A DNA stretch of 64,000 nucleotides from NCBI GenBank assembly GCA_965112735.1, contig OZ218950.1:1178001-1242000 (forward strand), given 5' to 3'. This document shows, in pieces, positions 1 through 63,790 of the stretch (the first letter of the stretch is position 1; each line of letters opens with the position of its first letter). Both the position numbers and the translations under genes were made by a program. This stretch comes from Phaeosaccion multiseriatum (lineage: Eukaryota; Protista; Ochrophyta, other classes). The notes below the pieces were generated by a model. It ran no database searches, was not told the origin of the DNA, and was given only the letters and a program-made list of their open reading frames with translations.

Positions 1-2075
1 AGTGAGCCCTTGCTCCGAGCCACGCGTTCTCCCCGACTTGGACAGCCTTGAAGACGAGCCCTCCCGTGCCTTCGATGGTGTGCGTGAAGATTGTGGAGTC
101 TTGCAACACCACCGCTTCGTCTCCAATGACGAGAAGATGCGCATCATCAGGCCTGAGCCATAAAGATGTGTCCTTGCCAACACTTGCCCCCAGCAGCCGC
201 AGCCACGCCGCGTACACCGGCCCGCCCGCGAAGTACTTGATGCAGAGAGCCTCTATGAAGGCAGGGCCCATGCTGCCGAAGCGACGTAAATCGAACGAAG
301 GCGAATCGAACGCTATGGGAGGCTGCCCCTCTTTGGCCTGCAAGGATGTGCCCAGAACTCGATGGAAATGAATGGCTGAGAGAGCGCCCGCCAAGGCCAT
401 GAGAACTTGAAAGACGAAGCTCCCCAACACAAGGAAGAACACTCCAGTATGGCTCTCGCTCAGAGTATCCTTCGCCACCACTTCCGGAAGGACAAAGGGA
501 CAGAAGGCGGCAGCCCCATGCACATGGCCATTGCGAAGCAGCAGGTCAGATGCCGACGCGCTGATCAGCACCCCCGGACACCATACGCCGAGGAGCAGCA
601 CCACAGTCGCAAGCCCACGCAGCGCATTGTGCACCCTCGACGGAACAGGAAGATTGCCTGCTGCATCGACGCCATCCTTCTCAGCATCAGCACTCGCTGG
701 GTTCGGCAATACAAACGGCCGAGGGGCGCCCACTACAGAAGAGTTGCGCGGCACGTCGTCGTCTCTACCCACAACGGTGCGATCGGCGACCGTGCTTCCG
801 TCCCCAATGCAAGCTCCGCCCAGGAGAAGAGCTTCGTTCGCAACAACGCTGAAGCGCCCGATGGTGATGCTTTGCGTATCCTCCTCTCCACGAGTTCCCC
901 CATCATCGAAAAGGTGCACACGGTTCGCGAGCTGGGAGTTTTCCCCTATCCTGAGCTTCTCCCATATCGTAGTGATAGGAAGTGTATGAAGTGTGCACCC
1001 CCGCTCCAGTCTGGCGCCCATGGCGGAAGCAAAAACACGGCTGAGCCCACAGTGTGCCACAAGAAGGAAGCCAACCTTGAAGAGAGGACTCTCCTGAAGA
1101 ACTCCGAGTGACAGCCGTGTGGTGGCGCTGGGGCCCAGTAGCAAGAAAATACGCTGTAGCGATAGCACTGCCACCATGTACAGCAGGCTTCCGATCATCA
1201 GCAGCACGGGGAACGCCAATGCACGAGCGAAGATGGGGACACTCTCCCCCGCGCCATCGTCATCACCCCCACCGGCAAGCACGAGTATCCAGAGGGGCAG
1301 CAGGTACGACCCCAAGTTGGTCACTGAAAGCAGGGCCAAAGCACAAAGCTCTTTTCCTATCCGCCGCAGCCCCTGCTCGCGTTCGACCTCTGCCAGCGGG
1401 CCAGAGAGTGACGAATGACCGAGCGACGCGTACGGACCGAGCTCCATCCCCTCGCCGATGATCACGTCCTTTGGCTCCTCATTCAGGCCCTCCCCCCCCT
1501 CCTGCGTCTGCCCCCCCTCCCATGGAGACGGACACACGTTGGACAGTATGCCCACCTTTGCCCCCTTCCCGATCCTCACGCGATGGACATGGAGCATGCC
1601 ATTCCGAGTAATGACAGACGGGCGAATGACGGCTCCGTACTCGATCACGGCCCCTTCTCCAATCTCGATCAAGTCATGCTCGTGCAGCAGCCAGCTCTCT
1701 AAGCGCGCGCTTCCACTGATTCGTGCCCCCAGCAGGCGGTTCCACACCCGCAAGGCGAAGGTACCACGGAGGGTAGAAATCAGCAGTGCGGCAAGTTTCA
1801 GCACATTCTGCACAGCATACCACCGCCAGTAGTACCAGCTCCTCACGGACCATCGCCCCGGTCGCATGCGGCCCAGCACAGTCCACTTCACCACTGCAAT
1901 CAGGGCAAGGAACCAGCTTGCTGACACGACGACGAGGAGTGGTAGCCAAGAAAGAATCCTCGTATTGCCGCGCCCTGCTCTGCGTAGCAAGTACACGCCA
2001 ACGAAGCTGGGAGAAAACCCGCAGCTGAGCACAGCAACAACGAGCAGCCAACTCAGAATCTGCAGCACCACTTGC
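1..2075 (-). CDS. Pls (epsilon-poly-L-lysine synthetase)-type NRPS terminal domain: 3 x [hydrophobic helix pair + left-handed beta-helix], truncated by window edge
   Basis: Hand translation of the open frame 2287->1 (762 codons, no stop): [15 protein letters not shown]..., [65 protein letters not shown]; second repeat AMGARLERG...[10 protein letters not shown]...ITIGRFSVV...CIGDGSTV; third repeat [13 protein letters not shown]...[10 protein letters not shown]...IFTHTIEG...[10 protein letters not shown]. Confidence 0.85.
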
Positions 2076-5000
2076 TTGTCAGTGCTGAGCCTCCGGTGCG
2101 CTTTCATCGCTTCCCCTCCTCCATCGACTGACTCGAAATCGCGCTCCTCGTCCGCCACTCGGGGGGCCTCGCTTGCTGCCGACGACTCCTCCCCGCTGTC
2201 TCCTCTGCCTCCGCCCTCCTCCGCGGCACCAAGCACTGAAAGTGCCACAGCGGTTCGGTTCTGGAAGATCTGCATTACTGTCAGAGCCTGCAGGAGTCAC
2301 ACAGACACAACAGGGTCAGTAACAAGAGCGGGACTCAACACGACGAAAGCTTTGGGCTCAAAGTTACTCACCTCGAAGCCGGGCACCTCTGCCCGGATAC
2401 GCGAAACCGCCTGAGCCGCACTCAACGATGTGCCTCCCTCTGCGAACAAGTCGTCATTGGCCTGCAAGCGAGGCTGCTCTGTGGCCTGCCTCAGGATGCC
2501 CAGCACTTGGCGGGCAGTGTCGCCTAACGCCTCGTCGCCGTCGGACGACTGTACAGCGGTTTTAATGTTTGCTTCCGCCTTAATCATTCTCAGCACCTCT
2601 TTCACGTCTCGCTTCCCGCTGCTCGTCATCGGCAGAGCATCCACGGCCACAGCCGTGCTCGGCACCATGTATGCCGGTAGCAGCTTGCCCACTCCTTGCA
2701 GCACCACCTCAACGTCGGCACTAGGAGGTGTCAGAGCCGCCACAACCGTCTCACGCTCTCTGTCCACGGCTGCCACAGCGCTCCTCACACCCTCTTGATG
2801 GAGCAGCGCAGCCTCCACCTCGCCCAGCTCAATGCGATAGCCGCGCACCTTCACTTGAGAGTCTCGGCGACCCCTAAACACCAGCGATCCGTCTGCCAGC
2901 TGCCGCACCAAGTCACCCTGGTAGAAGGTGTTAAGTTTGAGACGCGTCAGATCAGAACAGTGCCACAGGGCAGCAGAGAAAACCACCTCGACCCCCCCCC
3001 CCCCGTTGCATTCTCTGCTGTTCACTGCATGACATGCCAAAAGCAAGCCAAATGTACACACAACACACGCACACACACAAAGCCGCACACCCATGGGCAA
3101 CCTTTTCCACTTACCGTACGATACACTCTGCGCTGGTCCGCCAAGAAGGGCGCGGGGATGAAGGCCTTCGACGTGAGCTCTGGGCGCTTCAAGTACCCAC
3201 GGGCCAGCTGTCTCCCCCCAATGCACAGCTCGCCCTCCACGCCCTGAGGCACCAGCTGCAGACGCTTATCCACCACATACACTTGCACGCCGGCTCGAGG
3301 CTTGCCGATGACGAACCCATTCGACATGGCACCCGGACTGTACTCATGCGTCGTCACGGCATTCGTTTCGGTTGGGCCGTAGCTATTCACAAGGCGCACA
3401 TGGTGCCTCCACATGTCCACTTGGCCTTCCTTGATCGGCTCCCCAATCAATGCGATGGACCGTAGGGTGGCCTCCTTAGCTCCAGTGGTGATGTCTTGCG
3501 GTCGGAGCAGCGACAGCAGTGACGGGGTGCAGTACATGTCCGATACCCTCAAAGACCGTATCAGCTCCGGCAGGTCGTTCAGCATGGAGCCCTTCTCTGC
3601 CAAGCAAAGCGTCGCCCCACACGACAACGGCCCGAACAGCGACGCCACAGACACATCAAATGTCAAAGCAGCACTCAGGAGCACACGAGAAGATGCCGTT
3701 ATCGTCAGCTCCTCTTCGAAGAGAGTCGCCATGAAGCTGGCCGTGCTTCCATGCTCAATCATCACGCCCTTTGGCCGGCCGGTACTACCGGACGTGTGAA
3801 TCACGTACGCCATGTTCTCGCCCACCGCGTGGCACACAGGCTCCGCGGTACTCTCCACTTGCATCACAGCCACCACGTCCACACAGCTCACGTCTCCGAC
3901 ACGCCGCGCTAAGCTGGCATCGGCGGTTGCCAGCACCTCAGACTCGCCTGCTGCCTTTGCCGTCGTCAGAACGACGCTCAGCCCGGCGTCTTGTGCGATC
4001 ATCGACAGCCTATCGTCGGGATGCTCGGGATCCAGGGGCACGTACGCCGCCCCGGCCTTGAGCACGCCCAGCACTGCCACAACCGCCTCCACGCAGTCCC
4101 CAGCAATCAGCACCCCCACCAGGCACTCCGGCCCCACGCCCCTCCCCTGCAGCATGCATGCCACCGCATTCGCATGCCCATTCAGCTCCCCGTAGCTCAT
4201 CACCCGACCCGTCTCATACTCGTGCAGGGCCTCCTGCTCCGGACTGCGAGAGGCCATCTCTTCGAAAGCCGCGTGCAGGAGGGGCGGTGGTGGCGATGCT
4301 TCCTCTGCACCTCCCTCCGTGTCTCCATTGGCATCCCCCGCCACCAGTGCAGCGCCGCTCAACGTATCCACCACCTTCACACGGTCCTCGTGTGCCAAGA
4401 GATTCAGCTTCCACACGCTCTCGCCCGGCCTGCCCACTGCACTCTCCAGCAGCGCCAGGAAGCTCCGCCCCAGGGTCTCCACTGTGGCCTGGTCGAGCAC
4501 CGCCGTATTGTAGCACAGGCTGCCGTGCATATCCGACGCACTGTCCGTGCTGCGCACAAGGCATAGCTCGATGTCAGCCGTATTCTTCCAAGTATCCACA
4601 CCCGCCTCCTGCAGTACAAAGAAAGCCTGCAGCGCATTACCACGACCATCTCTGCCCAGCTGGGCCCGCTCCACCACCTTGTGGAACGGTGCCTCGGCAT
4701 GCTTCATGGCACCCAGATACGCGACCTGTACGCGAAGAAGCACCTCCCGAAAGCTGGGGCTTCCTCCCAGGCCCAGACGGAACGCGAGGGTGTTGACGAA
4801 GCATCCCATCACGCCCTCCAAGCCTTGCGCCACGTCTCTTCCGAAGTGCGCAGTGCCCACCACCACGTCCTCCGCTCCGCACACACGAGCCAGCAGCACT
4901 TGGAACGCGCCCATGAGCCCCACAAACAGCGTGGCGGAGCTATCCGCGCACAGTTTACTCAACTTGACCAGCATTCCATTGGGTAGGACCAAGTCCACCC

Positions 5001-8000
5001 TCCCGCTTCCTCCCACACGGATATCTTCACGCACCATTTCTCCACTGAGGCTCATTTGGTCATGTCGCTGACGGAGAGGCAGCTGCAGTGGACTGGTACC
5101 AGCCAGTTGACCCTGCCAGTATTCAAGCAGCTCCTCAATACGGCCTTCGCCGTCCAGCCGAGCTCGTTGCCACCTGGAGTAGTCCGCGAAGCTGAAGGGC
5201 AGAGCCGGTAGGTCTTGTGCGATTCCTCTCCCGGCCATGGCAGCCGCGCATGTGGCCTTGAACTCGCCCTGGAAGAGCAAGTAGGATGCACCATCAAAGA
5301 TGCAATGATGGAAAGTAGATACTGCGGCATACTGCTCCTCTAGTCCGCTCTGCTGCGGGAGGTGTACGACCAACGTACGCCATAGAGGCTGGCTCCGCTC
5401 CAAATCGAATGGCCGAGCGATATCGGCCTCGATCAGGCTCCGAGCGGCCCCAACACTGGTGGCCACGGCAGAGGAGAGACCAGCTGACACCACCGCGGCT
5501 GCCGTAGTTCCAAGCTGTACCTGCCTCAGAGAGCCCTGCTTTGTCCACTCAAGCGACGTCCGGAGCACATCATGTCGCTCCACTATGCTGCCTAACACTT
5601 GTGCTATCATGTCCACAATTTCAGCGGATGTTCGTCCGGAGATCAGCGAGATTGGCAGCGGCAGCACAAGTGGGAGATTGTACGCGCTCTGCCCGCCAGG
5701 GGAAGTCGTCCGCAGTGCTATGTCTGAAAAGTACATGTGTTCCTGCTGGTAAGCCGCGGGGGCGTCAGCATCCAAGGAGAAGTAGTGCGAAAGACCTGTT
5801 GCTTGATCATCAGGCTCACTCAGATGCCCCGAGTCCGCTCCCAGCACTTCCTCTTGGATCCATGCAGCCATTGCAGACACCGATGGATACGTAAACAAGG
5901 CGCCGCTCGACATGGTGACACCACACCAGGCCTCGACTCGCTTGCCAAACTCCACGGAACCCATCGAATCGAGCCCGGCTTCCATCAAGGGCATCGTTGC
6001 TGTAATGGTCACGTCATCGCCAACACACTCGACTGCCATACCCGTCAGGACATGCTCGATCCTCTCCCGCCGTGCTGACTCCGGCAAGTGCAGGAGCTCC
6101 TCCCGCACCTCGGCATTAACCTTTGCCGCCTCACCACTTTCTCCGCGGTCCGTCAACTGCCCGAGAAAATCGCTGTGCACAGGGGCCAAGCTCGCTCGGA
6201 ATCTGGACCACCTCATGGCCGGCATGACGGCCACCTCCTGCACGTTGGCTTGCGATTGACTTGCAAGGACGGCATCCAGAGTCTTCATACCTAGCGCCGA
6301 TGAGATCAGGCCCACTCCGGCCATCTCCGCAGCTTTGGACACCATTTCAAGCCGCACCGCCATACCCACGTCGCCCCATGGGCCCCACTGAATGTTGGAA
6401 GCAGGAAGGCCAAGCTGGCGTCGGCGGTACCGCATCAGCCCGTCCAAAGCAGCATTGGCCCCCGCGTAGGCGCTCTGATTGGACAAGCCAAGCAAAGCGG
6501 AGGTCGATGAGTACGAGGCGAAGAAGTCGATCTCCTCCCTGCCGCTCGCCGCCCACTCGAGGCACAGCGCGTGGAGATTCCAACCTCCCTGGATCTTGGC
6601 GGCAAAGACATTTCGCACGTTCTCTTCCGTCTCGCCCGACAACATTCCCTTTGCGCCAGTCACCCCCGCTGCGTGAATCACACCCCGAATGTGAGGCAGC
6701 CCCACCAAGGCCGTTGCTACAGCATCTCGAAGCTGGCCCATATCGGACACATCGCAGGCCACGGCCACAGCGGTGACACTCTCCATGCTCTGCAGGGCCT
6801 GCCACAGCTCTGAAGCTTCCTCTGTCGCCCGGCCGCTTCGAGAAAGGAGGAGCAGGTGTCGAGCACCCTGGGAGACCAAGTGATTCGCCGTCGCCAGACC
6901 CAGCCCCCCCAGACCACCGCTGATCAGGTAGGTCCCATCCTCCCTGCACGTGAAGCGATCGACTCCTGCCGGCGTCAGATGGAGTGTGCTGGGCACCAGC
7001 CTCGGAGCGAGGATCTCACACCCTCGAACCAGCAGGTCCACGCCTCGGCCGCCGTCGCGGGCTCCTGCAGCCAGCGTCACAGCCTGGGAGATAGCTTGGG
7101 CTTCCATCTTCTCTACTCTAGGTCGTGCATCCTCAAACTGTGGATACATGGCATACTCAAGGTCGATGTGGTTCACATCGAGGTCGCCCCGCTCCAGGCG
7201 TACGCTTCTCACCAGTCCCACTGCCCAGCTGTCCTGCCAACCAGCACCGCTGTACACTCCCGTTGTCACCACCGTGATCGGCATCACTGCCGCGTCCCCG
7301 TCTAAGCTCTGTACAGTTTGCACAAAGTGGATTGCCCCATCGGTAGCAGAGCCCGTTGCTGACGTCAAGTAGAAGAGATGGGCCCCACGTGGCTGCGCGT
7401 CCGAGCCGAGCGCCTCCACCATGTGCACCTCCACACCACTTGCTGTCGCCGCGCTTCGGACAGCTTCCAAGGCTCTGTGGTTGTTCGATGCGTGCTGCCC
7501 TTCGGCTGCCTCGGGAATCACGACGAGCCACGGAAGGCTGTCGGGCGCAGAAGCCTGCTGCGAAGCCGTGGGCACCTCCACCGCCTCCCACTCAACAACA
7601 TAGAGCGGGCCCTGCTCAGCTTCACTCTGCGGCTGAGGTGCTGCTGTGGCTCGCGCTGTGTACCAAGGAAAGGCTTTGCGCGTTGGGAACAGGATATGCT
7701 CCTTGCCCTTACTCTCTGGCTGCTGCACTGTGCTCAGAGCAAATCGAAACGAATCCTCAGAGTTCTGCCCTCGTGTGAGGGAGGAGATCCACGCCAGCCC
7801 CTCGCGACGCTCGCACATGGCTCCCATGCTGCTCAGCACAGGGTTGGGGCCCACCTCAACGATGCTCAGGTCAGCCCCCCTCCCGTCTCCCATCCAGTGC
7901 TGCACCAGCGTGTGGATGCCTTCTGCGAACAGCACTGGCGACAGCATGTGTTGCACCCAATACGTCGCCTGCGTCACCTCCTCCTCTCTTACCACCTCAC

Positions 8001-11000
8001 CCGTCACGTTGGACACCAGGGGAATGCGTGGAGCGCTGAATGACACCTGCCTCAGAACCTCCTCCAGCGCACCTACAGCGGGCTCCATCAGAGGAGAGTG
8101 GAAGGCGTGCGATACCTCCAGGGCCTTGCAGCCCACCCCATCTGCCGTCAGCCTCTCCACCACCTTGTCCACACCGCTGCGCGCTCCAGAGATCACGCTC
8201 GCGCTCGGTCCATTCGACGACGCCAGCACCACCTCGCCTGCCCCCCCCGCAGCGTCGATACTTGCCAAAGTCGCCTCCTTGCCTGCCCTCACTGCGAACA
8301 TCACTCCCTTGCCCTCGGGGCAGGCCTGCATGGCGGCTCCTCTCTTGGCGGACAGCATCAGTCCATCCTCCAGCGACATGACGCCGGCCACGCACGCCGC
8401 CACCACCTCGCCCAGGCTGTGGCCCATCACCATGGACAGCTCCACGCCCTCCGACTTCCAAAGCTCACACAGGGCGTACTCCAGCACAAACAGGCACGGC
8501 TGGCAGTAGCGTGTCTCCTTCAGCAGCGCTTGTGCAGTCTCCTCCTCCTCCTTCTCGTCCTCAGCGACCGCCGGGTACATGAGCTCCACCACAGACTTGT
8601 CCAGCCAAGCCCGCTCCATGAGCAACCTGCTGCACCGCTGTATGCACTCGCGGAACACGCCCTCCTTCTCGTACAGCTCTCTGCCCATGCCCACGTATTG
8701 CGAGCCCTGTCCAGTGAACACAAACGCCACCGGTGCACGCTTCTTGCTTTGCTGTCCATCCAGCTGCAGCAAGGCTTCGCCCCTCTCAACCAACGTTGGT
8801 CCGAAGCTGCTGAGCACTGCGTGGGCATTCGTGCCTCCAAATCCGAAGGAGCTCACCCCCACCACCACAGATCCATCGGAGTTGGTGGGTAAAGGGGTCA
8901 TGGAAGATGGGAACAGGACTGCAAGTCCCTCCATGTCGAGCTCTGGATTTTGCTCGATGAAGTGAAGATTGGGTGGAGCGGTCTTGTGCTGCGCCATCAG
9001 CACTGCTTTGATGAATCCGGCAATCCCTGCTGCACCCTCCAAGTGCCCAATGTTTGTCTTGAGCGCCCCCACGATCAAAGGCTTCGCTTCATCGCGGTCG
9101 TGGGCGAACACTCCTCTCAGAGCGCTCATCTCGATGGGGTCGCCGAGAGACGTGCCCGTGCCGTGCGCCTCCACGAAACTGACGTCGTTCGGACACAGCC
9201 CAGCGTCGATCAAGGCGTCTGCGATGAGCTGCTTTTGAGCGCCAGGGTTTGGAGCCGTCATCCGCGCGGTGGGCCCATTATGGTTCACAGCCGAGCCTCG
9301 CAAGACAGCCAGCACCTCGTCGTCGTTGGCAAGGGCGTCGTCTAGGCGCTTCACCACGATTGCTCCGCACCCCTCGCCTCTGACGTAGCCGTTGGCGGAC
9401 TTGTCAAATGTTTTACAGTGCCTTGAGAGTGAGGACGGAAGAGGGAAACAGGGGAGATTTAGCTAAGAAGGCGGGAGGAGAAGGGGCGATCTAAGGTTCT
9501 CACTCTACCTCCCTGAACGAAACAGTGGTGCGTAACCAGGTGCCTGCCGACTATAATACTAGCTTCCACCTGCCGGGGTATCATACTCATTCACTCTCTC
9601 CCTCCCTTCCTCCCTCCCTCCCTCCCTCCCTCCCTCCCTCCCTCCCTCCCTCCCTCCCTCCCTCCCTCCCTCCCTCCCTCCCTCCCTCCCTCCCTCCCTC
9701 CCTCTCTCACCCCCTCCCTCCCTCCTTCCCTCCCTTCCCTCCTTCCTTCCTCCCTACTCTCCCCCCAACGCACACTCACGCACTCACCCGTCTGGCGAGA
9801 GAAACCCTCCTGAGGAAAGGACCTTGAAGGGCGCCTCGCTGAGTAGCAGGTTCACTCCTCCGACGACAGCTGCGTCACACTTGCCCAATCGCAGGCTGCT
9901 GCAGGCGTTGTCCAGGGCGACCAAGGAAGAGGAGCACGCCGTGTCTACCGTTGAGCTCGGCCCCTTCAACCCCAGCGCGTAGGAAACTCGGTTGGCCAAA
10001 TTCGACATGGAGGCTCCTGACGCCACGTACACGCTCTCGCTTGCCTCGCCAGCTCCTTGGCTTGCTTTGACCTGCAGCCAATCGCTTCCAGCGCAGCCAA
10101 CAAAGACCCCTGTCTCGCTCTTGCGGAGACTGCGCTTGTCATAGCCTGCCCTGTGCAGCGCCTCGAAGGCCACCTCCAGCAGCACGCGCTGATTGGGGTC
10201 CATGCTTTCCACTTCCGCTGACGAAATACCAAAGAAGGTGTTGTCGAAGAGGTGGACGCCCTCTATGAAGCCTCCTCGCCACTCCTTAGAGCCGCTTCCC
10301 CACCGGTCTGCTGGAGCTGTAGAGATGCAGTCCGATCCCGTGCAAAGCATGCTCCAGAAACCTTGGGGCGAAGTCACTCCTCCTGGAAAGCGGCACGCCA
10401 TGCCCACCACCGCCAGCGGAGCTCGCACGCCTTGAGGCGAAGCCGAGGTGGGGCGCAAACCTCGCATTGGGTCTGTGGCAGCCCTTCCCATTACCTCGCC
10501 ATCAAGCCAGCCCACAAGCTCCGCCAAGCTGGGGTACTCAAAGAGCACATCGACGGTGGCTGTAACCCCAAAGTCCGTGTGAAGGCGATTCCGCACCTCC
10601 ACGAGGGCCATCGAATCCAGGCCTGCCTCCATCAAGGGCACATTGTCGTCCAGCGGGGGCATGTCTGCATCAACACACTTCAGCACGGTCGCCTTGAGCG
10701 CTTCCAGGAGAGCAGCGCGCCGATCCTCTGGGGAGAGAGCAGAGAGAGTCTCGCGCAGCTGTGAGAGGGCGTCTCCAGCTGGGGGAGGAGCAGATACAGG
10801 ACCCTCGCAATCATGCGCTGGTGTTGCCCTCTTCGGGAGGGGAAACTCTCGCGACGAGGGGAACCCCTGCCAAGGGGTGCCCACTCTCTCTGCTGCGCCT
10901 TTGGGCCTCATGCCGCCGTAGCTGCCCAAGATGACGTGGGCGTTGAAACCGCCAGCAGCGTAGGAATTCACTCCTGCGAGCAGCGTCGAGCCGTCGGAGC

Positions 11001-14000
11001 AGTAGGAAGAGAGGGGCGTCCTTCGGGTGGGCAGCGTGACGGGCACGCCCTCCAGCTTCAGGTTGGGGTTGACCTCCTTCAGATGTAGGTTGGCTGGGGC
11101 CTCTCGGTGCTGTACTACCAAGATGGCCTTGATGAGCTGAGCCATCCCTGACGCCCCTTCCATGTGGCCTAGAGTAGTCTTGACAGTGCCCACTACAAGG
11201 GGGGAGGCATCAGGCCTGTTGGGGGTGAACGCTGCCTTGAGTGCGCCTAATGAGTACCACGCGACGTGCGTGCGTGCGTGCGTGCGTGCGTGAGAGGGGG
11301 AGAGAGGGAGGGAGGGAGAGAGGGAGGGAGGGGGGGAGGAAGGGAGAGGGGGGGTAGGAGGGTGGAAGGGAGGGAGGGTAGGAGGGAGTGAGGGAGGGAG
11401 GGAGGGAGGGAGGGAGGGGGGAGGGATGGAGGGATGGAGGGAGGGAGGGAGGGGGGGGGGGAGGGAGGGAGGGAAGGAGGGAGGGAGGTAGGGAGGGAGA
11501 GAGGAGGGATGGAGGGAGGGGGAGGGAGGGAGGGAGGGGGAGGGAGGGAGGAAAGGATGGAAGGAGGAGGGATGAAGGGAGGAAAGGAGGGAGGGAGGGA
11601 CGAGTGGAGGGCACGAATACGCTTTATTATGTCTCATCACATCATCATTTTTCTAGTTGAGACGTAAGAGAGACATCACAATGATGGTCCAACACGAATC
11701 CCCTCCTTTAACCCCCTTTGCTTCCTTCAACGTACCCAGCTCGATGGCGTCGCCCATGACCGTTCCCGTGGCGTGAGCCTCAACGTAGCCCACTTCTCTC
11801 CCCTCGCACGCTGCCTGCCGCAGGGCGCTCCTCGCCAAGCTCTCTTGGGCGGCTCCCTTCGCGGCAGACAGAGAACTGCTGACGCCGCTGTGGCTGACAG
11901 CCGCTGCCTTGATGACGGCAAGGATATTGTCTCCGTCCTTGATGGCGTCCGGCAGGTACTTCAGCACGACGGCCCCGCTGCCCTCACTGCGCACGTAGCC
12001 GTCCCCGGCCGCGTCAAAGGATTTGCAGTACCTGGAGCAGGAGACGGGACACAGAAAGTAGAGTGGGGGGGGGGTGGATCAGTGTCCAAGCAAGGGACCA
12101 GAGAGAAGAGAAAGGGTGCTTTGGAAGGAAGAACATAGATGCAGCAACAGCTGCAGGAGCAAACTCACCCTTCCTTCGACAGAAGTCCTGCACTGGCCAG
12201 GGCGCCAAAGCCTTGGTCGTGGAGCAGCAGGTTGACCCCGCCAACGACGGCAGAGCTGCACTGCCTCAGTTTCAGACTGTTGCACGCGTTGCTAAGGGCC
12301 ACTAGGGCCGACGAACATGCTGCGTCTATGCTTTCGCATGGACCTACAAGGCCGAGTGTGTGCGAAATGCGGCCAGCGAAACATGCTCTGCTTGCCCCTA
12401 CCGACGTGTAGGCGCTGAGAGAAACACCATCCGCGCTCTCACGCAGCAAAGCCGGCCAGTCACTCCCTGCAGCGCCCACAAACACGCCAACTCGGTGACC
12501 TTCAAGCCTGCGTCGGCCCTCGTAGCCGGCTCTGTGCAGAGCCTCGTACGCCACTTCGAGCATGATGCGCTGGTTGGGATCTTGGGCCTCCGCCTCGGCG
12601 GTGGACATGCCGAAGAATGCGTTGTCGAACACTTCAACACCGTCGATGAAGCCACCTGCTCGCATGACGGGGAGAGGAGGAGCGTTCAAAATGGGGTGAG
12701 TGGGGCACAGAGACGGGCAAAGAAGCGCCCAGCAGCAAAGCTGTTCATGCCCTTCAAGACTAACATTTGCAAGCCTCGTGGACACAGGGTAAAAACGCAC
12801 CTCTCACTCCTGTTCCCAAGCCTCGCTCAAGGGGTGCATCGGTGACGCAGTCCTCTTTATTGCACAGCTTCGCCCAGAGCTCTTCCGGGCTGTTGCAGCC
12901 ACCGGGGAACCGACAGGCCATCCCAAGGACTGCAATATCGCCGCTGCTGCCGTCATAAGAAGGTACCCCAGGAATGGAGCGAGGCAGTCCGTCAATGCCA
13001 GGAAGTGTGTCCTCCCTGCTCGCACACAAGCGAGACACACCCCTCGCGGTGGGTGTGTGGAACATCTCTGCCACCTGGAGCGCCTAAGTACAGCAACGAG
13101 TAAAGAGATCCGACGGTCAACGACTACATTAGCAAACCATTTGGAACCACCGGCCACACCAGAAAGACAGCCCTCCGTCCCACTCACCTCGAAGCCTGGC
13201 ACCTCTACGCGGATGCGCGCTGTGACACTTACAGCGTCAAGCGAAGTGCCTCCCTCGGCGAACAAGTCGTCGCTGGCTCGCAGACCCGGCCGCCCAATGG
13301 CCTCTCGCATAATGCCGAGCACTTGACGGGTGGTGCCGTCCATAGGTGCGTCATCGCTGACGCTTAGGCTCCGTTGCTGGCCAGGGCCATGGTGACGTGC
13401 AGCTCGAATGGCTCTGAGAACCTCTTTCACGTCTCGCTTCCCGCTGCTCGTCATCGGTAGAGCCTCCATAGCCACAGCCGTGCTCGGCACCATGTATGCC
13501 GGTAGCAGCTTGCTCACTCCTTGCAGAACCATCTCAACGTCGGCACTAGGAGGTGTCAGAGCCGCCACAACCGTCTCGCGCTCGCTGTCCACGGCTGCCA
13601 CAGCACTCCTCACACCCTCTTGATGGAGCAGCGCAGCCTCCACCTCGCCCAGCTCAATGCGATAGCCGCGCACCTTCACTTGAGAGTCTCGGCGACCCCT
13701 AAACACCAGCGATCCGTCTGCCAGCTGCCGCACCAAGTCACCCTGTCCGAAGGTGTTAAGTTTGAGACGCGTCAGATCAGAACAGTGCCACAGGGCAGCA
13801 GAGAAAACCACCTCGGCCCCCCCCCCCCCCCGTTGCATTCTCTGCTGTTCACTGCATGACATGCCAAAAGCAAGCCAAATGTACACACAACACACGCACA
13901 CACACAAAGCCGCACACCCATGGGCAACCTTTTCCACTTACCGTACGATACACTCTGCGCTGGTCCCCCAAGAAGGGTGCGGGGATGAAGGCCTTTGACG

Positions 14001-17000
14001 TGAGCTCTGGGCGCTTCAAGTACCCACGGGCCAGCTGTCTCCCCCCAATGCACAGCTCGCCCTCCACGCCCTGAGGCACCAGCTGCAGACGCTTGTCCAC
14101 CACATACACTTGCACGCCGGCTCGAGGCTTACCGATGACGAACCCACTCGACGTGGCACCCGGACTGTACGCATGTGTGGTCGCGAAAACCGTCGCCTCT
14201 GTTGGGCCGTAGCTATTCACAAGGCGCACATGGTGCCGCCACATGTCCACTTGGCCTTCCTTGATCGGCTCCCCAGCCAATGCGATGGACCGTAGGGTGG
14301 CCTCCTTAGCTCCAGTGGTGATGTCTTGCGGTCGAAGCAGCGACAGCAGTGACGGGGTGCAGTACATGTCTGTTACCCTCAAAGACCGTATCAGCTCCGG
14401 CAGGTCGTTCAGCATGGAGCCCTTCTCTGCCAAGCAAAGCGTCGCCCCACACGACAACGGCCCGAACAGCGACGCCACAGACACATCAAATGTCAAAGCA
14501 GCACTCAGGAGCACACGAGAAGATGCCGTTATCGTCAGCTCCTCTTCGAAGAGAGTCGCCATGAAGCTGGCCGTGCTTCCATGCTCAATCATCACGCCCT
14601 TTGGCCGGCCGGTACTACCGGACGTGTGAATCACATACGCCATGTTCTCGCCCACCGCGTGGCACACAGGCTCCGCGGTACTCTCCACTTGCATCACAGC
14701 CACCACGTCCACACAGCTCACGTCTCCGACACGCCGCGCTAAGCTGGCATCGGCGGTTGCCAGCACCTCAGACTCGCCTGCTGCCTTTGCCGTCGTCAGA
14801 ACGACGCTCAGCCCGGCGTCTTGTGCGATCATCGACAGCCTATCGTCGGGATGCTCGGGGTCCAGAGGCACGTACGCCGCCCCGGCCTTGAGCACGCCCA
14901 GCACTGCCACAACCGCCTCCACGCAGTCCCCAGCAATCAGCACCCCCACCAGGCACTCCGGCCCCACGCCCCTCCCCTGCAGCATGCATGCCACCGCATT
15001 CGCATGCCCATTCAGCTCCCCGTAGCTCATCACCCGACCCGTCTCATGCTCGTGCAGGGCCTCCTGCTCCGGACTGCGACAGGCCATCTCTTCGAAAGCC
15101 GCGTGCAGGAGGGGCGGTGGTGGCGATGCTTCCTCTGCACCTCCCTCCGTGTCTCCATTGGCATCCCCCGCCACCAGTGCAGCGCCGCTCAACGTATCCA
15201 CCACCTTCACACGGTCCTCGTGTGCCAAGAGATTCAGCTTCCACACGCTCTCGCCCGGCCTGCCCACTGCACTCTCCAGCAGCGCCAGGAAGCTCCGCGC
15301 CAGGGTCTCCACTGTGGCCTGGTCGAGCACCGCCGTATTGTAGCACAGGCTGCCGTGCATGTCCGATGCACTGTCCGTGCTGCGCACAAGGCATAGCTCG
15401 ATGTCAGCCGTATTCTTCCAAGTATCCACACCCGCCTCCTGCAGTACAAAGAAAGCCTGCAGCGCATTACCACGACCATCTCTGCCCAGCTGGGCCCGCT
15501 CCACCACCTTGTGGAACGGTGCCTCGGCATGCTTCATGGCACCCAGATACGCGACCTGTACGCGAAGAAGCACCTCCCGAAAGCTGGGGCTTCCTCCCAG
15601 GCCCAGACGGAACGCGAGGGTGTTGACGAAGCATCCCATCACGCCCTCCAAGCCTTGCGCCACGTCTCTTCCGAAGTGCGCAGTGCCCACCACCACATCC
15701 TCCGCTCCGCACACACGAGCCAGCAGCACTTGGAACGCGCCCATGAGCCCCACAAACAGCGTGGCGGAGCTATCCGCGCACAGTTTACTCAACTTGACCA
15801 GCATTCCATTGGGTAGGACCAAGTCCACCCTCCCGCTTCCTCCCACACGGATATCTTCACGCACCATTTCTCCACTGAGGCTCATTTGGTCATGTCGCTG
15901 ACGGAGAGGCAGCTGCAGTGGACTGGTACCAGCCAGTTGACCCTGCCAGTATTCAAGCAGCTCCTCAATACGGCCTTCGCCGTCCAGCCGAGCTCGTTGC
16001 CACCTGGAGTAGTCCGCGAAGCTGAAGGGCAGAGCCGGTAGGTCTTGTGCGATTCCTCTCCCGGCCATGGCAGCCGCGCATGTGGCCTTGAACTCGCCCT
16101 GGAAGAGCAAGTAGGATGCACCATCAAAGATGCAATGATGGAAAGTAGATACTGCGGCATACTGCTCCTCTAGTCCGCTCTGCTGCGGGAGGTGTACGAC
16201 CAACGTACGCCATAGAGGCTGGCTCCGCTCCAAATCGAATGGCCGAGCGATATCGGCCTCGATCAGGCTCCGAGCGGCCCCAACACTGGTGGCCACGGCA
16301 GAGGAGAGACCAGCTGACACCACCGCGGCTGCCGTAGTTCCAAGCTGTACCTGCCTCAGAGAGCCCTGCTTTGTCCACTCAAGCGACGTCCGGAGCACAT
16401 CATGTCGCTCCACTATGCTGCCTAACACTTGTGCTATCATGTCCACAATTTCAGCGGATGTTCGTCCGGAGATCAGCGAGATTGGCAGCGGCAGCACAAG
16501 TGGGAGATTGTACGCGCTCTGCCCGCCAGGGGAAGTCGTCCGCAGTGCTATGTCTGAAAAGTACATGTGTTCCTGCTGGTAAGCCGCGGGGGCGTCAGCA
16601 TCCAAGGAGAAGTAGTGCGAAAGACCTGTTGCTTGATCATCAGGCTCACTCAGATGCCCCGAGTCCGCTCCCAGCACTTCCTCTTGGATCCATGCAGCCA
16701 TTGCAGACACCGATGGATACGTAAACAAGGCGCCGCTCGACATGGTGACACCACACCAGGCCTCGACTCGCTTGCCAAACTCCACGGAACCCATCGAATC
16801 GAGCCCGGCTTCCATCAAGGGCATCGTTGCTGTAATGGTCACGTCATCGCCAACACACTCGACTGCCATACCCGTCAGGACATGCTCGATCCTCTCCCGC
16901 CGTGCTGACTCCGGCAAGTGCAGGAGCTCCTCCCGCACCTCGGCATTAACCTTTGCCGCCTCACCACTTTCTCCGCGGTCCGTCAACTGCCCGAGAAAAT

Positions 17001-53000: not shown

Positions 53001-56000
53001 AGATGGGGGCAGAGAAGGAAGGACAAGCCGATGAGAGGGATGATGCTTGTGTTTACCTGTCAGCAAGCCCTCTATGACTCTACTCGAGCTACAGGAGCTC
53101 GATGCTCCCCAAGGCCAGCCCCCCCATTGTCCGTTCTCCGTACGTACCAGTCCTTGGACAAGAAACCTCCCTTGTCGAACTGCTCGAAGGAACGGGAGCT
53201 GAGTAGCAGGTTCACTCCTCCCACAACCGCAGCTTCGCACATGCCGAAGCGAAGGTAGCGACAAGCCGTGTCCAAGGCAACGAGCGAGGAAGAGCAAAGC
53301 GTATCAACAGATATGCTTGGGCCTCGCAAGCCCAGTGCGTAGGACAGGCGATTTGCAGGGCAGCCTGCTGACTCGCCCATCATGGAGTGAGCTTTGGTGT
53401 CACCATCCTTGTTCAGCGCGGCCCAGTCGCCGTGCTGCATGGAGCCCACGAACACTCCGGTGTTGCTATTGCGCAGCGTGTCCATGGAGAAGCCTGCCTC
53501 GTGCAGCGCCTCGTAGCCGACCTCGAGCATGATGCGCTGAGTGGGGTCCATGGCCTCCGCCTCGGCTACGGAGATGCCAAACGTGGCGTTGTCGAACATC
53601 TCCACGCCGTCGATGAAGCCTCCGTGCCACTCCTTCGCCGCACCAGTGAGTCTTCCCGAGGGCATGGCGGCGATGCAGTCCCTTCCCTCCAGCAGCATGG
53701 ACCAGAAAGCGTCAGGGCTGTCTGCGCCTCCAGGGAAGCGGCACGCCATGCTCACTATTGCCAGCGGGGCAGAAGCGTCGCCCCCCCCTTGAGACGATGG
53801 CATCCTCCTGGGCAGGCGCAGGCTGCTCGCACTTCCCTCCATGAGCGCTGAGCCCAACCACTCCGCCAAGGCCGCCACGGTGGGGTGGGCGAAGAGGGCG
53901 GCACTACTAACGGGAATGTCCGTGAGCAGGTGCAGACGCTGCCTCAGCTCCATGAGCGCCAACGAATCCATGCCAGCCTCCATGAGAGGTTTGTCCATGT
54001 CGATGCCGACAGAGCCTGCCGTGCTGGAGAGGGCGATATCGGAGATGACGGATCGAAGCCTCTCTTGGCGTTCAGCTGGACTGACACCGCGGAGCTCTAC
54101 TGCCAAGGAGTTTTTTCCGGCCGCCGATGTCGGTGGGGCGGGCAGCAGCTTGAAGGCCTTTCTGCTCGTGAACGGGGAGGCTCTCACGTTGGTCTTCTCC
54201 GCGTGTGAGATGGCCGTCCCCTCCAGGATGACGTGGGCATTGACACCGCCAAACCCAAAGGAGTTGACAGCTGCAAAAGGAGCAGAAGTAACCACAGCGA
54301 GCAGAAGGGCATGGTGAGAACAGATTCAGCCATTATCCATCACACGATAGCTCATACCCTCTAAAGTCCTCCTTAACTTGTCTCAAGAAGACGCGAGTGA
54401 GTGAGTGGGAGTGGGTGAGTAAGTGATGAGTGAGTGAGTGAGTGAGTGAGTGAGTGAGTGAGTGAGTGAGTGAGTGGGTGAGTGAGTGAGTGAGTGAGTG
54501 AGTGAGTGAGTGAGTGAGTGAGTGAGTGAGTGAGTGAGTGAGTGAGTGAGTGAGTGAGTGAGTGAGTGGTGAGTGAGTGAGTGAGTGAGTGAGTGAGTGA
54601 GTGAGTGTTACGAGATAAGGCATCCCAGTATGCCTTCAGTATTATCCAAATAGAGTGAGTGAGTGAGTGAGTGAGTGAGTGAGTGAGTGAGTGAGTGAGT
54701 GAGTGAGTGAGTGAGTGAGTGAGTGAGTGAGTGAGTGGTGAGTGAGTGAGTGAGTGAGTGAGTGAGTGAGTGAGTGTTACGAGATAAGGCATCCCAGTAT
54801 GCCTTCAGTATTATCCAAATAGAGTGAGTGAGTGAGTGAGTGAGTGAGTGAGTGAGTGAGTGAGTGAGTGAGTGAGTGAGTGAGTGAGTGAGTGAGTGAG
54901 TGGTGAGTGAGTGAGTGAGTGAGTGAGTGAGTGTTACGAGATAAGGCATCCCAGTATGCCTTCAGTATTATCCAAATAGAGTGAGTGAGTGAGTGAGTGA
55001 GTGAGTGAGAGAGTGAGTGAGTGAGTGAGTGAGTGCGGGAGTGAGTGAGTGAGTGAGTGAGTGAGTGAGTGAGTGAGTGAGTGAGTGAGTGAGTGAGTGA
55101 GTGAGTGAGTGAGTGAGTGAGTGGCTGAATGACTGAGTGAGTGGTCGCAGGAAACGTTTTTTAATAAGGGCCCCAACGCACCTCCGATTCGGGTGGAGAT
55201 GGGGGTCATGCGTCCGGGGATGGGCAGCAGAGCGCTGTTGCCCTCCGTCTTCAGTGCAGGGTTCAGCGTGGACAGGTTGAGATTGGGAGGCGCTTGGACA
55301 TGCCTGAGCACCAGCACCGTCTTGATGAGCCCTGCAATGCCTGCCGCAGCCTCCGCGTGACCAAGGTTGGTCTTGATCGCTCCAACGACGATACGGCGGG
55401 CTGTTGCCAGGTCGTGGTCTCCGTAGGTTCCGGCGATGGAAGCCCACTCCGTGCGGTCCCCGAGGGGCGTGCCCGTGCCGTGCGCCTCGATGAAGCTCAC
55501 GTCGGACAGAGCGATGCCCGCCTCTGCTACGGAGTCCAAGACCGCGGCCTTCTGTGCCGCTTCGTTGGGAGCGGTGAGGGTCGTGCCGTGGCCCGTGTGA
55601 TTGATGCAGGAGCCTCGAATCACCGCCAATATGTTGTCTTGGGCCTCTATGGCGTCTTCGTGGCGCTTTAGCACGACAGCGCCGCAGCCCTCTGCTCGCA
55701 GCCGCAGGGCACACGCAGCAAATGGAGGTGACTGGAGGGTGAGCTAGGTGGTGGTCGAGCCGTGCTCATCAGGTTTATAGAACAAGGATAATCTCAGACC
55801 CAGCCAAAGAAACACTCTCCGCTCATCCTGCACTTCTCTCCTTCCCTTTCCTCCCCCCTTCCTCTCCCTTTCCCTTTCTCCTTATCTGTGCCCCTGCCCC
55901 TCTCCATATCTCCGTCCCGCCCTCTCCCTCTCTGTCCCGCTACCTCTCTCGCTCTCCCGATCTTTCTCTCCATCTCCCCTTCTCTCCCTCCCTGTCTCAT

Positions 56001-60953: not shown

Positions 60954-62259
60954 ATGCAGCGAGGAGTCAGTATCGAGGTAGGAGAGGGAAAAAAGGGAAG
61001 GAAAGGAAGACACCTCCGAGGGGGGTGAGCGGACTCTATCTTTCCCTCTCCTCTCCTCTCAACCTCTTTTACCTCCTTCCCCCCTTTTTCTCTCTGCACT
61101 ACCATCTTTCCCCGCTTGCCTTTGCCTCACAGGCTAATCGCCTGTATGAAGCCATTATCGGGGGGGACAGCGTCCAAAGGGTGCGAGCGGCCGCGAGGGC
61201 CCTCGTCGCCAAAAACGGAGGGAGGAAGGCATGCTTGGATGGGCCCCTCGATAACGAGCTGCGTCCTGCCCTGTACACAGCTGTATATGTGGGGAATGGG
61301 GACATAATTGCTCTTTTGCTGCAAGAGGGGGCGTCGCCGAATGTTGCAAGGCCTTCAAATGGCTGCACTGCACTGCTGCTCGCAGCTGAGCATGGGGATC
61401 CTGCTGCGGCACAGCAGCTGCTTTCAGCGGGTGCTAATCCCAACCACGTGGATGACAGAAATGTTTCCGGCTTCACCCCCTTGTTGATGGCCGCACAGCA
61501 TGGGCACGACAGCGTGACGCAGCTGCTGCTCAACTCCGGGGCAGATGCGGATATGGTACACCGCGGCGGATGTTCTCCGCTTGCTATTGCGAGCCAGGAA
61601 GGGCATGGTATTGTGGTGGAGCAACTCATCAGAGCTGGTGCTGACGTCAACAAACGTAACCATGAAAAGAGGAGAACGGTGTTGATGCCAGCGTGCACCT
61701 ACGGCCACCGAAGTATTGTACGAAAACTGCTCAGGGCTGGTGCCGAGGTGAATGCACTGAGTGGCGACGGGTTCGGAGCGATACACTTGGCGTCTACAAA
61801 TGGCCATGCTCGTGTCGTGGAGGAACTCGTCTCAGGAGGGGCCGATGTGGAGATGCCCAACAGTGAGGGCCTCACAGCTCTGTACATGGCTACTTATCTT
61901 GGCCACAGGGCAGTGATCCGTGAACTCTTGTCTGCGGGGGCTGATCCGGACAGGGGGGCAATGTCAATGGGATGATGTCCTTGTTTGTTGCGGCAATGAA
62001 GGGTCACACTGGGGCGGTGATGGAGCTTCTCTCAGGAGGGGCCTCCCTGGCAAAGGCTCTGACTCAGGCACGAGGGAGTCACGCTGTAACCTCAATCGAG
62101 CGCCTTCTGGCCGCGGACAGACAGCACTTTGCGTCACAAAGCGCTTTGGACCTGATGCGAGGCACTGACCCTCTCTTTCGCAAGGAAGGGAGGCTGAAGG
62201 TGTCCCAGAGAGAGCTTAGCCCTGAGGTGCTGCAGGAGGTGGCGGAGGAGATGGCATGA
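60954..62259 (+). CDS. Ankyrin-repeat protein (about 8 repeats); exon 60954-60977, intron 60978-61132, exon 61133-62259 with a frameshift at the G6 run 61953-61958
   Basis: Repeats GCTALLLAAEHG, GFTPLLMAAQHGH, GCSPLAIASQEGH, GLTALYMATYLGH with LLxxGAD/N; GAG|GTAGGA donor and pyrimidine-rich CAG acceptor; one extra G joins ORF 61025..61975 to ORF 61972..62259. Confidence 0.88.
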
Positions 62260-63280
62260 ACAGAGGAGTGCCTCTCACCGGCGGTGTGGAGTCGGCTTGG
62301 GAAAGGAGGACTGGTGCTGATCTGAGGGAGAGGACGAGGATGAGAAGGAAGGGGTGCGTGGGCGTAGGAGGTCAGCGTGAGGGGCTGGGGGGTAGGCTGT
62401 TCGCTACCACTCTCCAGGACGCAGTGTCTTTGTAACAAACAGGACCTAAGTTACGAAAAGAAGGAGAGACGGGAAAGAGCGCAGATTGGGAACCGTGATC
62501 GTGACTGACGTTTAACAAGGCAAAAAGTAGACAAAATATTCACAACGCTGGAACAAAACGAATCAATGCTTGGACTTGACTGTCCTTGATTGGCGCCTCC
62601 CCGCCTCTCATCATCTCTCCCTCCATCTCTCTCTATCCACATCCCTCTTATCTCTCTTCTCTCTCTCTCTCTCTCTGCTGCTCCATAGAGAAGAACGCAA
62701 CTTCCGGTGTGTCTCCCTCTCTCTCTCTCTCTCTCTCGCTCCATAAGAAGACAAGTTGACCATCGATCAGTGGAAGGCCGGCAAGTCTGTACGGCCTACT
62801 TTGGATGAGACAGGCGCCTACCACTTCCCCACCTGAGGTGACCAAGAGAGTGAACAATCACAAAGCAAGGCCATCACCATGGCATGGAAGGGAAGAGAGG
62901 CGGCGAAAGAGAGGGGGGAGGGGGGAAGGGAGGGGGAGGAGAGAGAGAGGTGTGGGGAGAGGTAGCGCGAAGGAAAATCGAGCAGAACGGCAACGGCATT
63001 GGTGGGTGAGGGATCCGCGGCAGGATCGATTCAGCTCAACGCGCACAAGCAATCGCATCATGCAAACAATATCAAAACACACACACACACACACATATCC
63101 ACACACATATCCACATGCCCATGGGGCAAGAAGACGGCAGGGGTACTCGGTAAAGAGCAACGCAACACCACAGAACAAACACATGGGCCCTCAGTACAAC
63201 GCATCTGGATCATGCTTGCTCGTAACGTCGTGCTTCCCTTCCGTTTCCCTTCCTTTCCCTCCTCTCCCCTTCCTTGCTTA

Positions 63281-63790
63281 CATTTGCGAAAGCAGCAGGC
63301 CTTTACGGTCATCGATTCGGCCCCGTCCTTCTCCTGCCGCTGCCCCTGCTGCCCCCGTCCCTGCCTTTGCCCCTGCCCATACTCCTCCTGCTGCTGCCGC
63401 TCCTGCCCCTCCGCCTGCCCCTCCTCCTGCCTCTTCTCCTGCCCTTGCTCCTGCCCTCCGATCTGATGTTCTTCTTGAGGTTGACGATGATAATGATAAT
63501 GATGACGATGATGATGATGATGGTGGTGATGATGACAGCAGCGTGGGAAGGCTCTCCTCCAAGAAGTCCGTGGCTCGCATGTCTGAGTACTGTGCTCCCA
63601 TCACCTCCGCTGCTGCCTCCGCCTCCACCTCCGCCTGCCCTGCACAAGCAGTGGCAGCGGCAGCGGCAGCGACATTGGCGGCTTCTGTCTCTGCCTGTGT
63701 TGGTTCTTCGTCGTCATCCAAGTCGCTGCAATTTGTTGGAATCGTCTGAAGGAGGTCAGACAGATCCGTCCGGGCGACGCCGCGCTTCTC
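63281..63790 (-). CDS. Low-complexity (Ala/Ser/Glu/Gly-rich) exon of an unidentified gene, probably continuing beyond the window
   Basis: ORF 63278..63958 has a protein-like core (DLSDLLQTIPTNCSDLDDDEEP...), ends at a GTAAGC donor-like site and is preceded by a CT-repeat tract; no recognisable domain. Confidence 0.35.

Follow-up and report, generated by a model that had tools for sequence, protein, structure and literature searches.

The PKS-NRPS gene and its terminal exon

The 64,000-nt window analysed here, from Phaeosaccion multiseriatum (GCA_965112735.1, contig OZ218950.1, positions 1,178,001 to 1,242,000), has on its minus strand a gene for a polyketide synthase-nonribosomal peptide synthetase (PKS-NRPS). 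By Pfam, the gene has about ten KS-containing PKS modules and two C-A-PCP modules, which fits the 12-module line described in an initial annotation made from the sequence alone. The terminal exon of the gene encodes a Pls/PosA-type membrane and triple beta-helix domain that is joined in frame to the last peptidyl carrier protein domain (PCP). This domain is a real feature of the gene and represents a known domain family in a variant that is so far uncharacterised. Its identity, its relatives and its possible role in product release are considered below. Coordinates are on the minus strand unless stated otherwise.

The last PKS module and the last NRPS module lie in 3115..9357, where the Pfam scan gives KS (C-terminal half)-AT-KR-ACP-C-A. 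An intron of 197 nt (3114..2918, GTAAGT..CAG) splits the sequence between YRT and GDL. The penultimate exon (2372..2917) then encodes the C-terminal subdomain of the last A domain, from GDLVRQ onward (Pfam AMP-binding_C in the open reading frame (ORF) 2297..3226), and closes with the first half of the last PCP, including its phosphopantetheine serine in a GGTSL motif (codon 2428..2426). An 84-nt intron had been placed after the second PCP. Such an intron is present at 2371..2288 and splits the last PCP. It begins with GTGAGT and finishes with CTGCAG, and read-through translation meets in-frame stops immediately. The predicted spliced junction, 2372/2287, joins ...CCCGGCTTCGAG to GCTCTGACAGTA.

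From 2287 to 1 the frame has 762 codons and zero stops and reaches the window edge, as the initial annotation had stated. The ORF list leaves it out because the frame runs off the end of the window. Residue numbers below refer to the translation of this exon, with residue 1 at the 2287 end. Both strings quoted in the annotation were found in the translation, the one of 23 letters at residue 134 and FTHTIEG at residue 734; the histidine of the latter, His736, is codon 82..80.

The first ~20 residues of the exon (2222..2287) complete the last PCP with the usual final PCP helices. In the other NRPS module, which is almost a duplicate of this one, the identical PCP codon is likewise interrupted by an intron (...VPGFE, then GTGAGT; 13187..13075, 113 nt). 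After this intron the PCP of module 1 resumes in parallel with the start of the terminal exon, and the next KS follows. In BLASTP of the spliced tail, the A domain, the PCP and the membrane domain are covered by single alignments that cross the junction, among them those to P0038 (97-807) and to P0001, a canonical protein of 1341 residues (101-1046 on 411-1298). The terminal exon therefore appears to be the genuine 3' part of the PKS-NRPS gene. Since the junction has no RNA support, splicing is treated as an inference, although a strong one from the sequence. The shared intron position (13075-13187 and 2288-2371) also fits a tandem duplication of the KS-AT-KR-ACP-C-A-PCP block, intron included.

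Four public sequencing runs that hold this DNA gave only short polymorphic contigs. Loose ends of contigs at 2920 and 3313 were considered as splice signs and rejected, since they mismatch the spliced sequence; they were ascribed to the duplicated module. Contigs from two runs also differ by 1-2 nt in the poly-G runs of window positions 1485-1515, in a low-confidence loop of the first beta-helix block (C1). The indels at 1492 and 1511 sit in these runs and are probably homopolymer noise rather than real variants. The reading frame on either side of 1485-1515 agrees with the homologues.

Identity and fold of the terminal domain

The exon matches TIGR02353, the NCBIfam model of the Pls/PosA NRPS terminal domain, in three stretches with an E value of 2.7e-37. 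The Kyte-Doolittle profile has three hydrophobic pairs (73-98/115-133, 314-337/357-375 and 559-577/616-641), and LLGA-type turns occur at 186-191, 423-428 and 699-704. AlphaFold2, given an alignment of 66 domains, produced a model with a mean pLDDT of 78.8 and a pTM of 0.84. The model consists of six long helices (69-103, 108-138, 306-338, 352-384, 551-585 and 614-648) with a strand-rich block after each pair. Both hydropathy and the model thus give the TIGR02353 layout of six helices in three pairs between three soluble blocks. The PosA domain is described as about 730 residues long, with six helices that form three pairs and with three left-handed beta-helices, each of five turns, arranged in approximate three-fold symmetry (PMC10522769).

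The best Swiss-Prot fold match by Foldseek is the characterised PosA (A0A5K6CNB8), with residues 626-1288 on query residues 74-760, an E value of 2.6e-18 and a TM score of 0.60 by query length, both structures being predicted. Foldseek on the Protein Data Bank (PDB) returned only single beta-helix acetyltransferases; the matches to serine, Vat and maltose acetyltransferases have a probability of 1.0 and weak E values. A sequence search of PDB chains with the exon gave no match. The Pls-type identity claimed in the initial annotation is thus supported by the profile, the helices and the fold match, but the domain belongs to a sister clade and its TIGR02353 score is far below the curated cut-off.

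The exon was also said to have three repeats. Three hydrophobic pairs, three turns and three model blocks are present, but the repeats are only weakly alike when compared directly: repeats 1 and 3 are 31% identical over 83 residues (E 7e-5), and repeats 1 and 2 show no significant similarity. It is thus the profile match and the model that support a three-fold layout.

Between the PCP and the first helix is an acidic, glycine-rich linker (2084..2221, residues 23-68), which is predicted to be disordered, with pLDDT <50 for residues 24-50. Repeat 1 (1388..2083), defined like the others by alignment and model and here also by hydropathy, has a hairpin (69-103, 108-138), a KW..GR..PG..W..YY.RW motif, an LLGARIS turn and block C1, which carries a low-confidence insert at 257-295. 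It is the best conserved repeat and matches all three repeats of the homologues. Repeat 2 (653..1372) has a hairpin (306-338, 352-384), an AMGARLE turn and block C2; residues 474-508 in this block score 34.6 bits against Pfam Hexapep (cut-off 27). The KW...W motif is deleted in this repeat; an LQRIFL motif is common to the query and P0038 of Chrysoparadoxa. Repeat 3 (1..637) has a hairpin (551-585, 614-648), an LLGASVG turn and block C3, which is cut by the window edge. Since homologues extend about 43-90 residues past the last window residue, the domain is shortened by the window and not by the gene.

Conservation was assessed on 53 columns that are conserved in at least 85% of 65 other aligned domains; 47 of them fall inside the window. 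His736 is retained. It is the histidine of the QTHLFED motif, which reads FTHTIEG in the query, and its column is conserved in 98% of the aligned Pls-type domains. The nearest relatives keep 32-37 of the 53 columns.

Relatives and clade placement

A search of 1.84 billion representative sequences gave 967 matches. The top match has no more than 32% identity, and the majority are A-T-Pls proteins of ~1300 residues. Architectures in which a PKS or NRPS runs into TIGR02353, which the initial annotation had proposed to look for in eukaryotes, were found in Chrysoparadoxa, Stygiella and Phalansterium. The Chrysoparadoxa australica protein (P0038, CAM9397790.1) is ER-KR-ACP-C-A-PCP-Pls, so that it shares the KR-ACP-C-A-PCP-Pls tail of the query gene, and its gene model stops 19 residues after the Pls-type domain. 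A Stygiella incarcerata transcript (P0064) encodes 4380 residues of a PKS ending in a Pls-type domain, and the Phalansterium protein P0002 is C-A-T-Pls. A metagenomic protein combines two amine-oxidase domains, an ACP and a Pls-type domain.

One relative is bacterial. The protein MFH0784194.1 (P0114), from a Pseudomonadota metagenome-assembled genome (MAG), is A-T-C-A-T-Pls. Its gene stands alone beside a 4'-phosphopantetheinyl transferase (PPTase) gene, with no thioesterase gene and no other NRPS gene nearby. The A-T-C-A-T-Pls gene occupies 10001-18111 of L001 in the MAG (GCA_043798185.1), and a type III CRISPR-Cas locus lies a few kb past the PPTase gene. Work on the sister clade could use this small bacterial protein as a model.

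Trees were built with FastTree on 123 domains and with IQ-TREE on 46; the second leaves out P0061, P0087, P0150 and P0143, which have long branches, and most rows of the main clade. A main clade and a sister clade are separated in both trees, with support of 98 and 99. The query groups with P0020 (metagenomic) and P0038 in both (support 97 and 99), within the sister clade, which holds nearly all of the extended architectures. The TIGR02353 score is 580-764 bits in the main clade, 171-330 in seven domains of the sister clade and 128.5 in the query, against the cut-off of 423.1. Since full-length sister-clade domains also fail the cut-off, the low score of the query is not just a result of the last about 50-90 residues that it lacks. 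On this sequence evidence the query domain is placed in an uncharacterised sister clade of the polycation polymerases and not among the polymerases themselves.

Some sister-clade proteins had been labelled A-T-Pls from their length. This label was dropped, since Pfam showed acyl-ligase-type loaders and an extra FMN_dh domain. P0040, P0053 and P0090 have an acyl-ligase-type A domain, a T domain, the Pls-type domain and then an FMN-dependent alpha-hydroxy-acid dehydrogenase (FMN_dh). P0040 also has an N-terminal cyclic-nucleotide-binding domain. P0006, an A-T-Pls protein of the main clade, carries a fused 4'-phosphopantetheinyl transferase domain at its C-terminus, behind the membrane domain.

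Loader pocket

Asp at pocket position 1 and Glu at position 3 of the loading A domain are conserved in all cationic homopolymer synthetases (PMC10522769). This Asp/Glu pair is present in 71 of 73 main-clade loaders. It is absent from all nine NRPS-type loaders of the sister clade, and seven further sister-clade loaders are acyl-ligase-like, lack the pair (0/7) and do not have even the Asp. The last A domain of the query has D, V and A at positions 1-3 (motif FDVSVAS). Its pocket residues were read from FDVSVAS, ALIGE and one 11-residue motif, and there is no acidic residue at the other placeable positions. The substrate is predicted to be an alpha-amino acid that is not basic, with position 4 (residue 278) not reliably placed. 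Two independent markers, the TIGR02353 score and the loader pocket, follow the split between main and sister clade.

The match of the A domain to LgrA in the PDB (325 bits) was rejected as a specificity clue because its score is the sum of two domains. The A domains at 3025-4290 and 13852-15117 are near-identical and differ at pocket positions. By motif counting these differences are A-L-I-GE against A-L-A-GE and PTE-TNAV against PTE-ATVF.

Proposed function

In Pls-type domains a free amine attacks the carrier-bound aminoacyl thioester, and beta-helix acyltransferases such as LpxA and LpxD use acyl-ACP donors and a His base. By analogy with Pls/PosA and with these acyltransferases, the terminal domain is most probably the release catalyst of the assembly line, with a rough probability of 0.6 for this explanation as a whole. 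One-shot acyl transfer is the likelier mode compared with homopolymer growth. Splicing would complete the last PCP and append a membrane-embedded domain of the Pls/PosA fold. The six helices would form three hairpins, and the three left-handed beta-helix blocks would pack as a pseudo-trimer. Each two-helix hairpin should bring the chain back to the same side of the membrane, so that all three blocks would face the PCP. His736 may activate an incoming amine or hydroxyl, or possibly water. The activated nucleophile would then attack the thioester of the finished hydroxy-acyl peptide on the last PCP, and the chain would be freed at, or through, the membrane, perhaps coupled to export.

Several observations weigh against this proposal. 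The score of 128.5 bits fails the curated TIGR02353 cut-off, which marks equivalogs. The query keeps only 31 of the 47 well-conserved columns in the window. Residue 717 (codon 139..137) is His in the query and Asp in 65 of 65 other aligned domains. This position is 19 residues, or one beta-helix turn, ahead of His736; the D717H change could, on the sequence, mean altered or lost catalysis, and His717 and His736 may form a changed catalytic pair. The stop codon and any domain that follows lie outside the window, which cuts the domain. Long branches in the sister clade make the fine placement unsure, and since this clade has no characterised member, a release function is suggested by analogy only. 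Neither the 2372/2287 joint nor the 3114/2918 joint was found in the four public runs, which look like DNA and are uninformative on this point, and a search limited to RNA-Seq listed no run with this DNA, so that the splice is without RNA evidence.

The initial annotation left open whether the domain offloads the chain or polymerises it. An iterative polymerase as in Pls would link hydroxy-acyl peptides into a polyamide or polyester, or would add a poly-amino-acid tail at the membrane. The fold shared with the polymerase PosA, the retained His736 and the chain hydroxyls from KR-only modules, which could act as nucleophiles, are consistent with such an activity. However, pocket position 3 holds Ala in place of Glu, and by the published rule (PMC10522769) the donor should then carry no amine in its side chain. 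The Asp/Glu pair is missing from all loaders checked in the clade, and the complete assembly line would have to be run through for every turnover. A domain outside the polymerase clade whose donor is no diamino acid is unlikely to build a homopolymer; of the two options, release by acyl transfer is the likelier.

It is somewhat less improbable, though still doubtful, that the domain is degenerate and mainly tethers the megasynthase to the membrane, with release left to a separate enzyme or to a reductase, thioesterase or other domain beyond the window edge. The 16 of 47 conserved columns that are changed, including the otherwise invariant Asp, and the missing KW...W motif of repeat 2 would suit this role, as would the further C-terminal FMN_dh domain that P0040, P0053 and P0090 show sister-clade proteins can bear. 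Yet no stop interrupts the 762-codon frame, the predicted structure is confident and His736 is retained; P0038, the nearest relative, stops right after its Pls-type domain, and the bacterial A-T-C-A-T-Pls protein has no other release candidate. A separate gene or relic that is not spliced to the PKS-NRPS is very improbable. The junction is without RNA evidence, but the frame starts in the middle of the PCP, where no start codon context is needed, and that PCP is incomplete without the terminal exon. The intron position is common to the paralogous module, and the homologues are collinear across the junction. Release by a single acyl transfer at the membrane is preferred to each of these explanations.

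Comparison with known systems

The characterised members of the Pls/PosA family are single A-T modules (PMC10522769), as the initial annotation had said; the PosA paper noted eukaryotic homologues, with its network limited to proteins of 1100-1800 residues. Pls of Streptomyces albulus, which makes epsilon-poly-L-lysine, and PosA of Acinetobacter baumannii, which makes delta-poly-L-ornithine, resemble the query in the C-terminal placement after a carrier domain, in the six helices in three pairs, in the three beta-helix blocks and in the conserved His of the QTHLFED motif. In contrast to the query, these enzymes load a diamino acid through the Asp/Glu pocket of their single A-T module and polymerise it, whereas the query has ~ten PKS and two NRPS modules and a last A domain with D-V-A. 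Its motif is reduced to T-H-x-x-E, the invariant Asp is His, and it belongs to a separate clade.

A similar architecture is seen in the sister-clade proteins P0038, P0064, P0002, P0114 and P0020, in which the Pls-type domain ends PKS, PKS-NRPS or multi-module NRPS lines. Like the query, the sister-clade proteins are below the TIGR02353 cut-off and lack the Asp/Glu pocket. They differ in being only 24-29% identical to the query, and some are single-module acyl-ligase forms with the FMN dehydrogenase; none has a known product.

Each block of the query has the beta-helix fold of the trimeric left-handed beta-helix acyltransferases, including serine acetyltransferase, LpxA/LpxD, Vat and maltose O-acetyltransferase. 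In these enzymes a His acts as the base, and the acyl group of a pantetheine thioester is passed on to an amine or hydroxyl. They are soluble homotrimers, whereas the query has three unequal blocks in one carrier-fused chain with membrane hairpins between them. Release from assembly lines is known through thioesterase, reductase or terminal condensation domains. The usual release domains (thioesterase, terminal reductase, terminal condensation) occupy the same place after the last carrier domain, but the query domain has an unrelated fold and is predicted to be embedded in the membrane.

A literature search found no paper on a PKS or multi-module NRPS that ends in a Pls-type domain. The earlier statement that no characterised example of this fusion is known therefore stands, but the fusion is not unique, since it occurs uncharacterised among the public proteins of other eukaryotes and in a bacterial MAG. 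If the proposed function is correct, it would amount to a new chemistry of release and would tie megasynthases directly to membranes. More generally, the domains of the sister clade may form an additional class of release domain for assembly lines. They would be single-chain, pseudo-trimeric beta-helix acyltransferases embedded in the membrane, which either pass the finished polyketide or peptide chain to an acceptor on the membrane side or link its release to export; this wider proposal is tentative and is held with less confidence than the release function of the query domain. Since the clade spans Chrysoparadoxa, Stygiella, Phalansterium and the bacterial MAG, one characterised member would annotate many orphan genes. 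The Asp/Glu loader pocket, the TIGR02353 score and the clade also provide a practical rule for separating polycation polymerases from the rest.

Other features of the window

The plus strand has an ankyrin-repeat ORF of 316 residues (61025-61975) outside the megasynthase gene, past its 5' end. The neighbouring ORF at 62805-63749 has no Pfam match. In 2-kb bins, GC skew is positive at 10001-12000 and 54001-56000 and is steadily negative along the rest of the gene.

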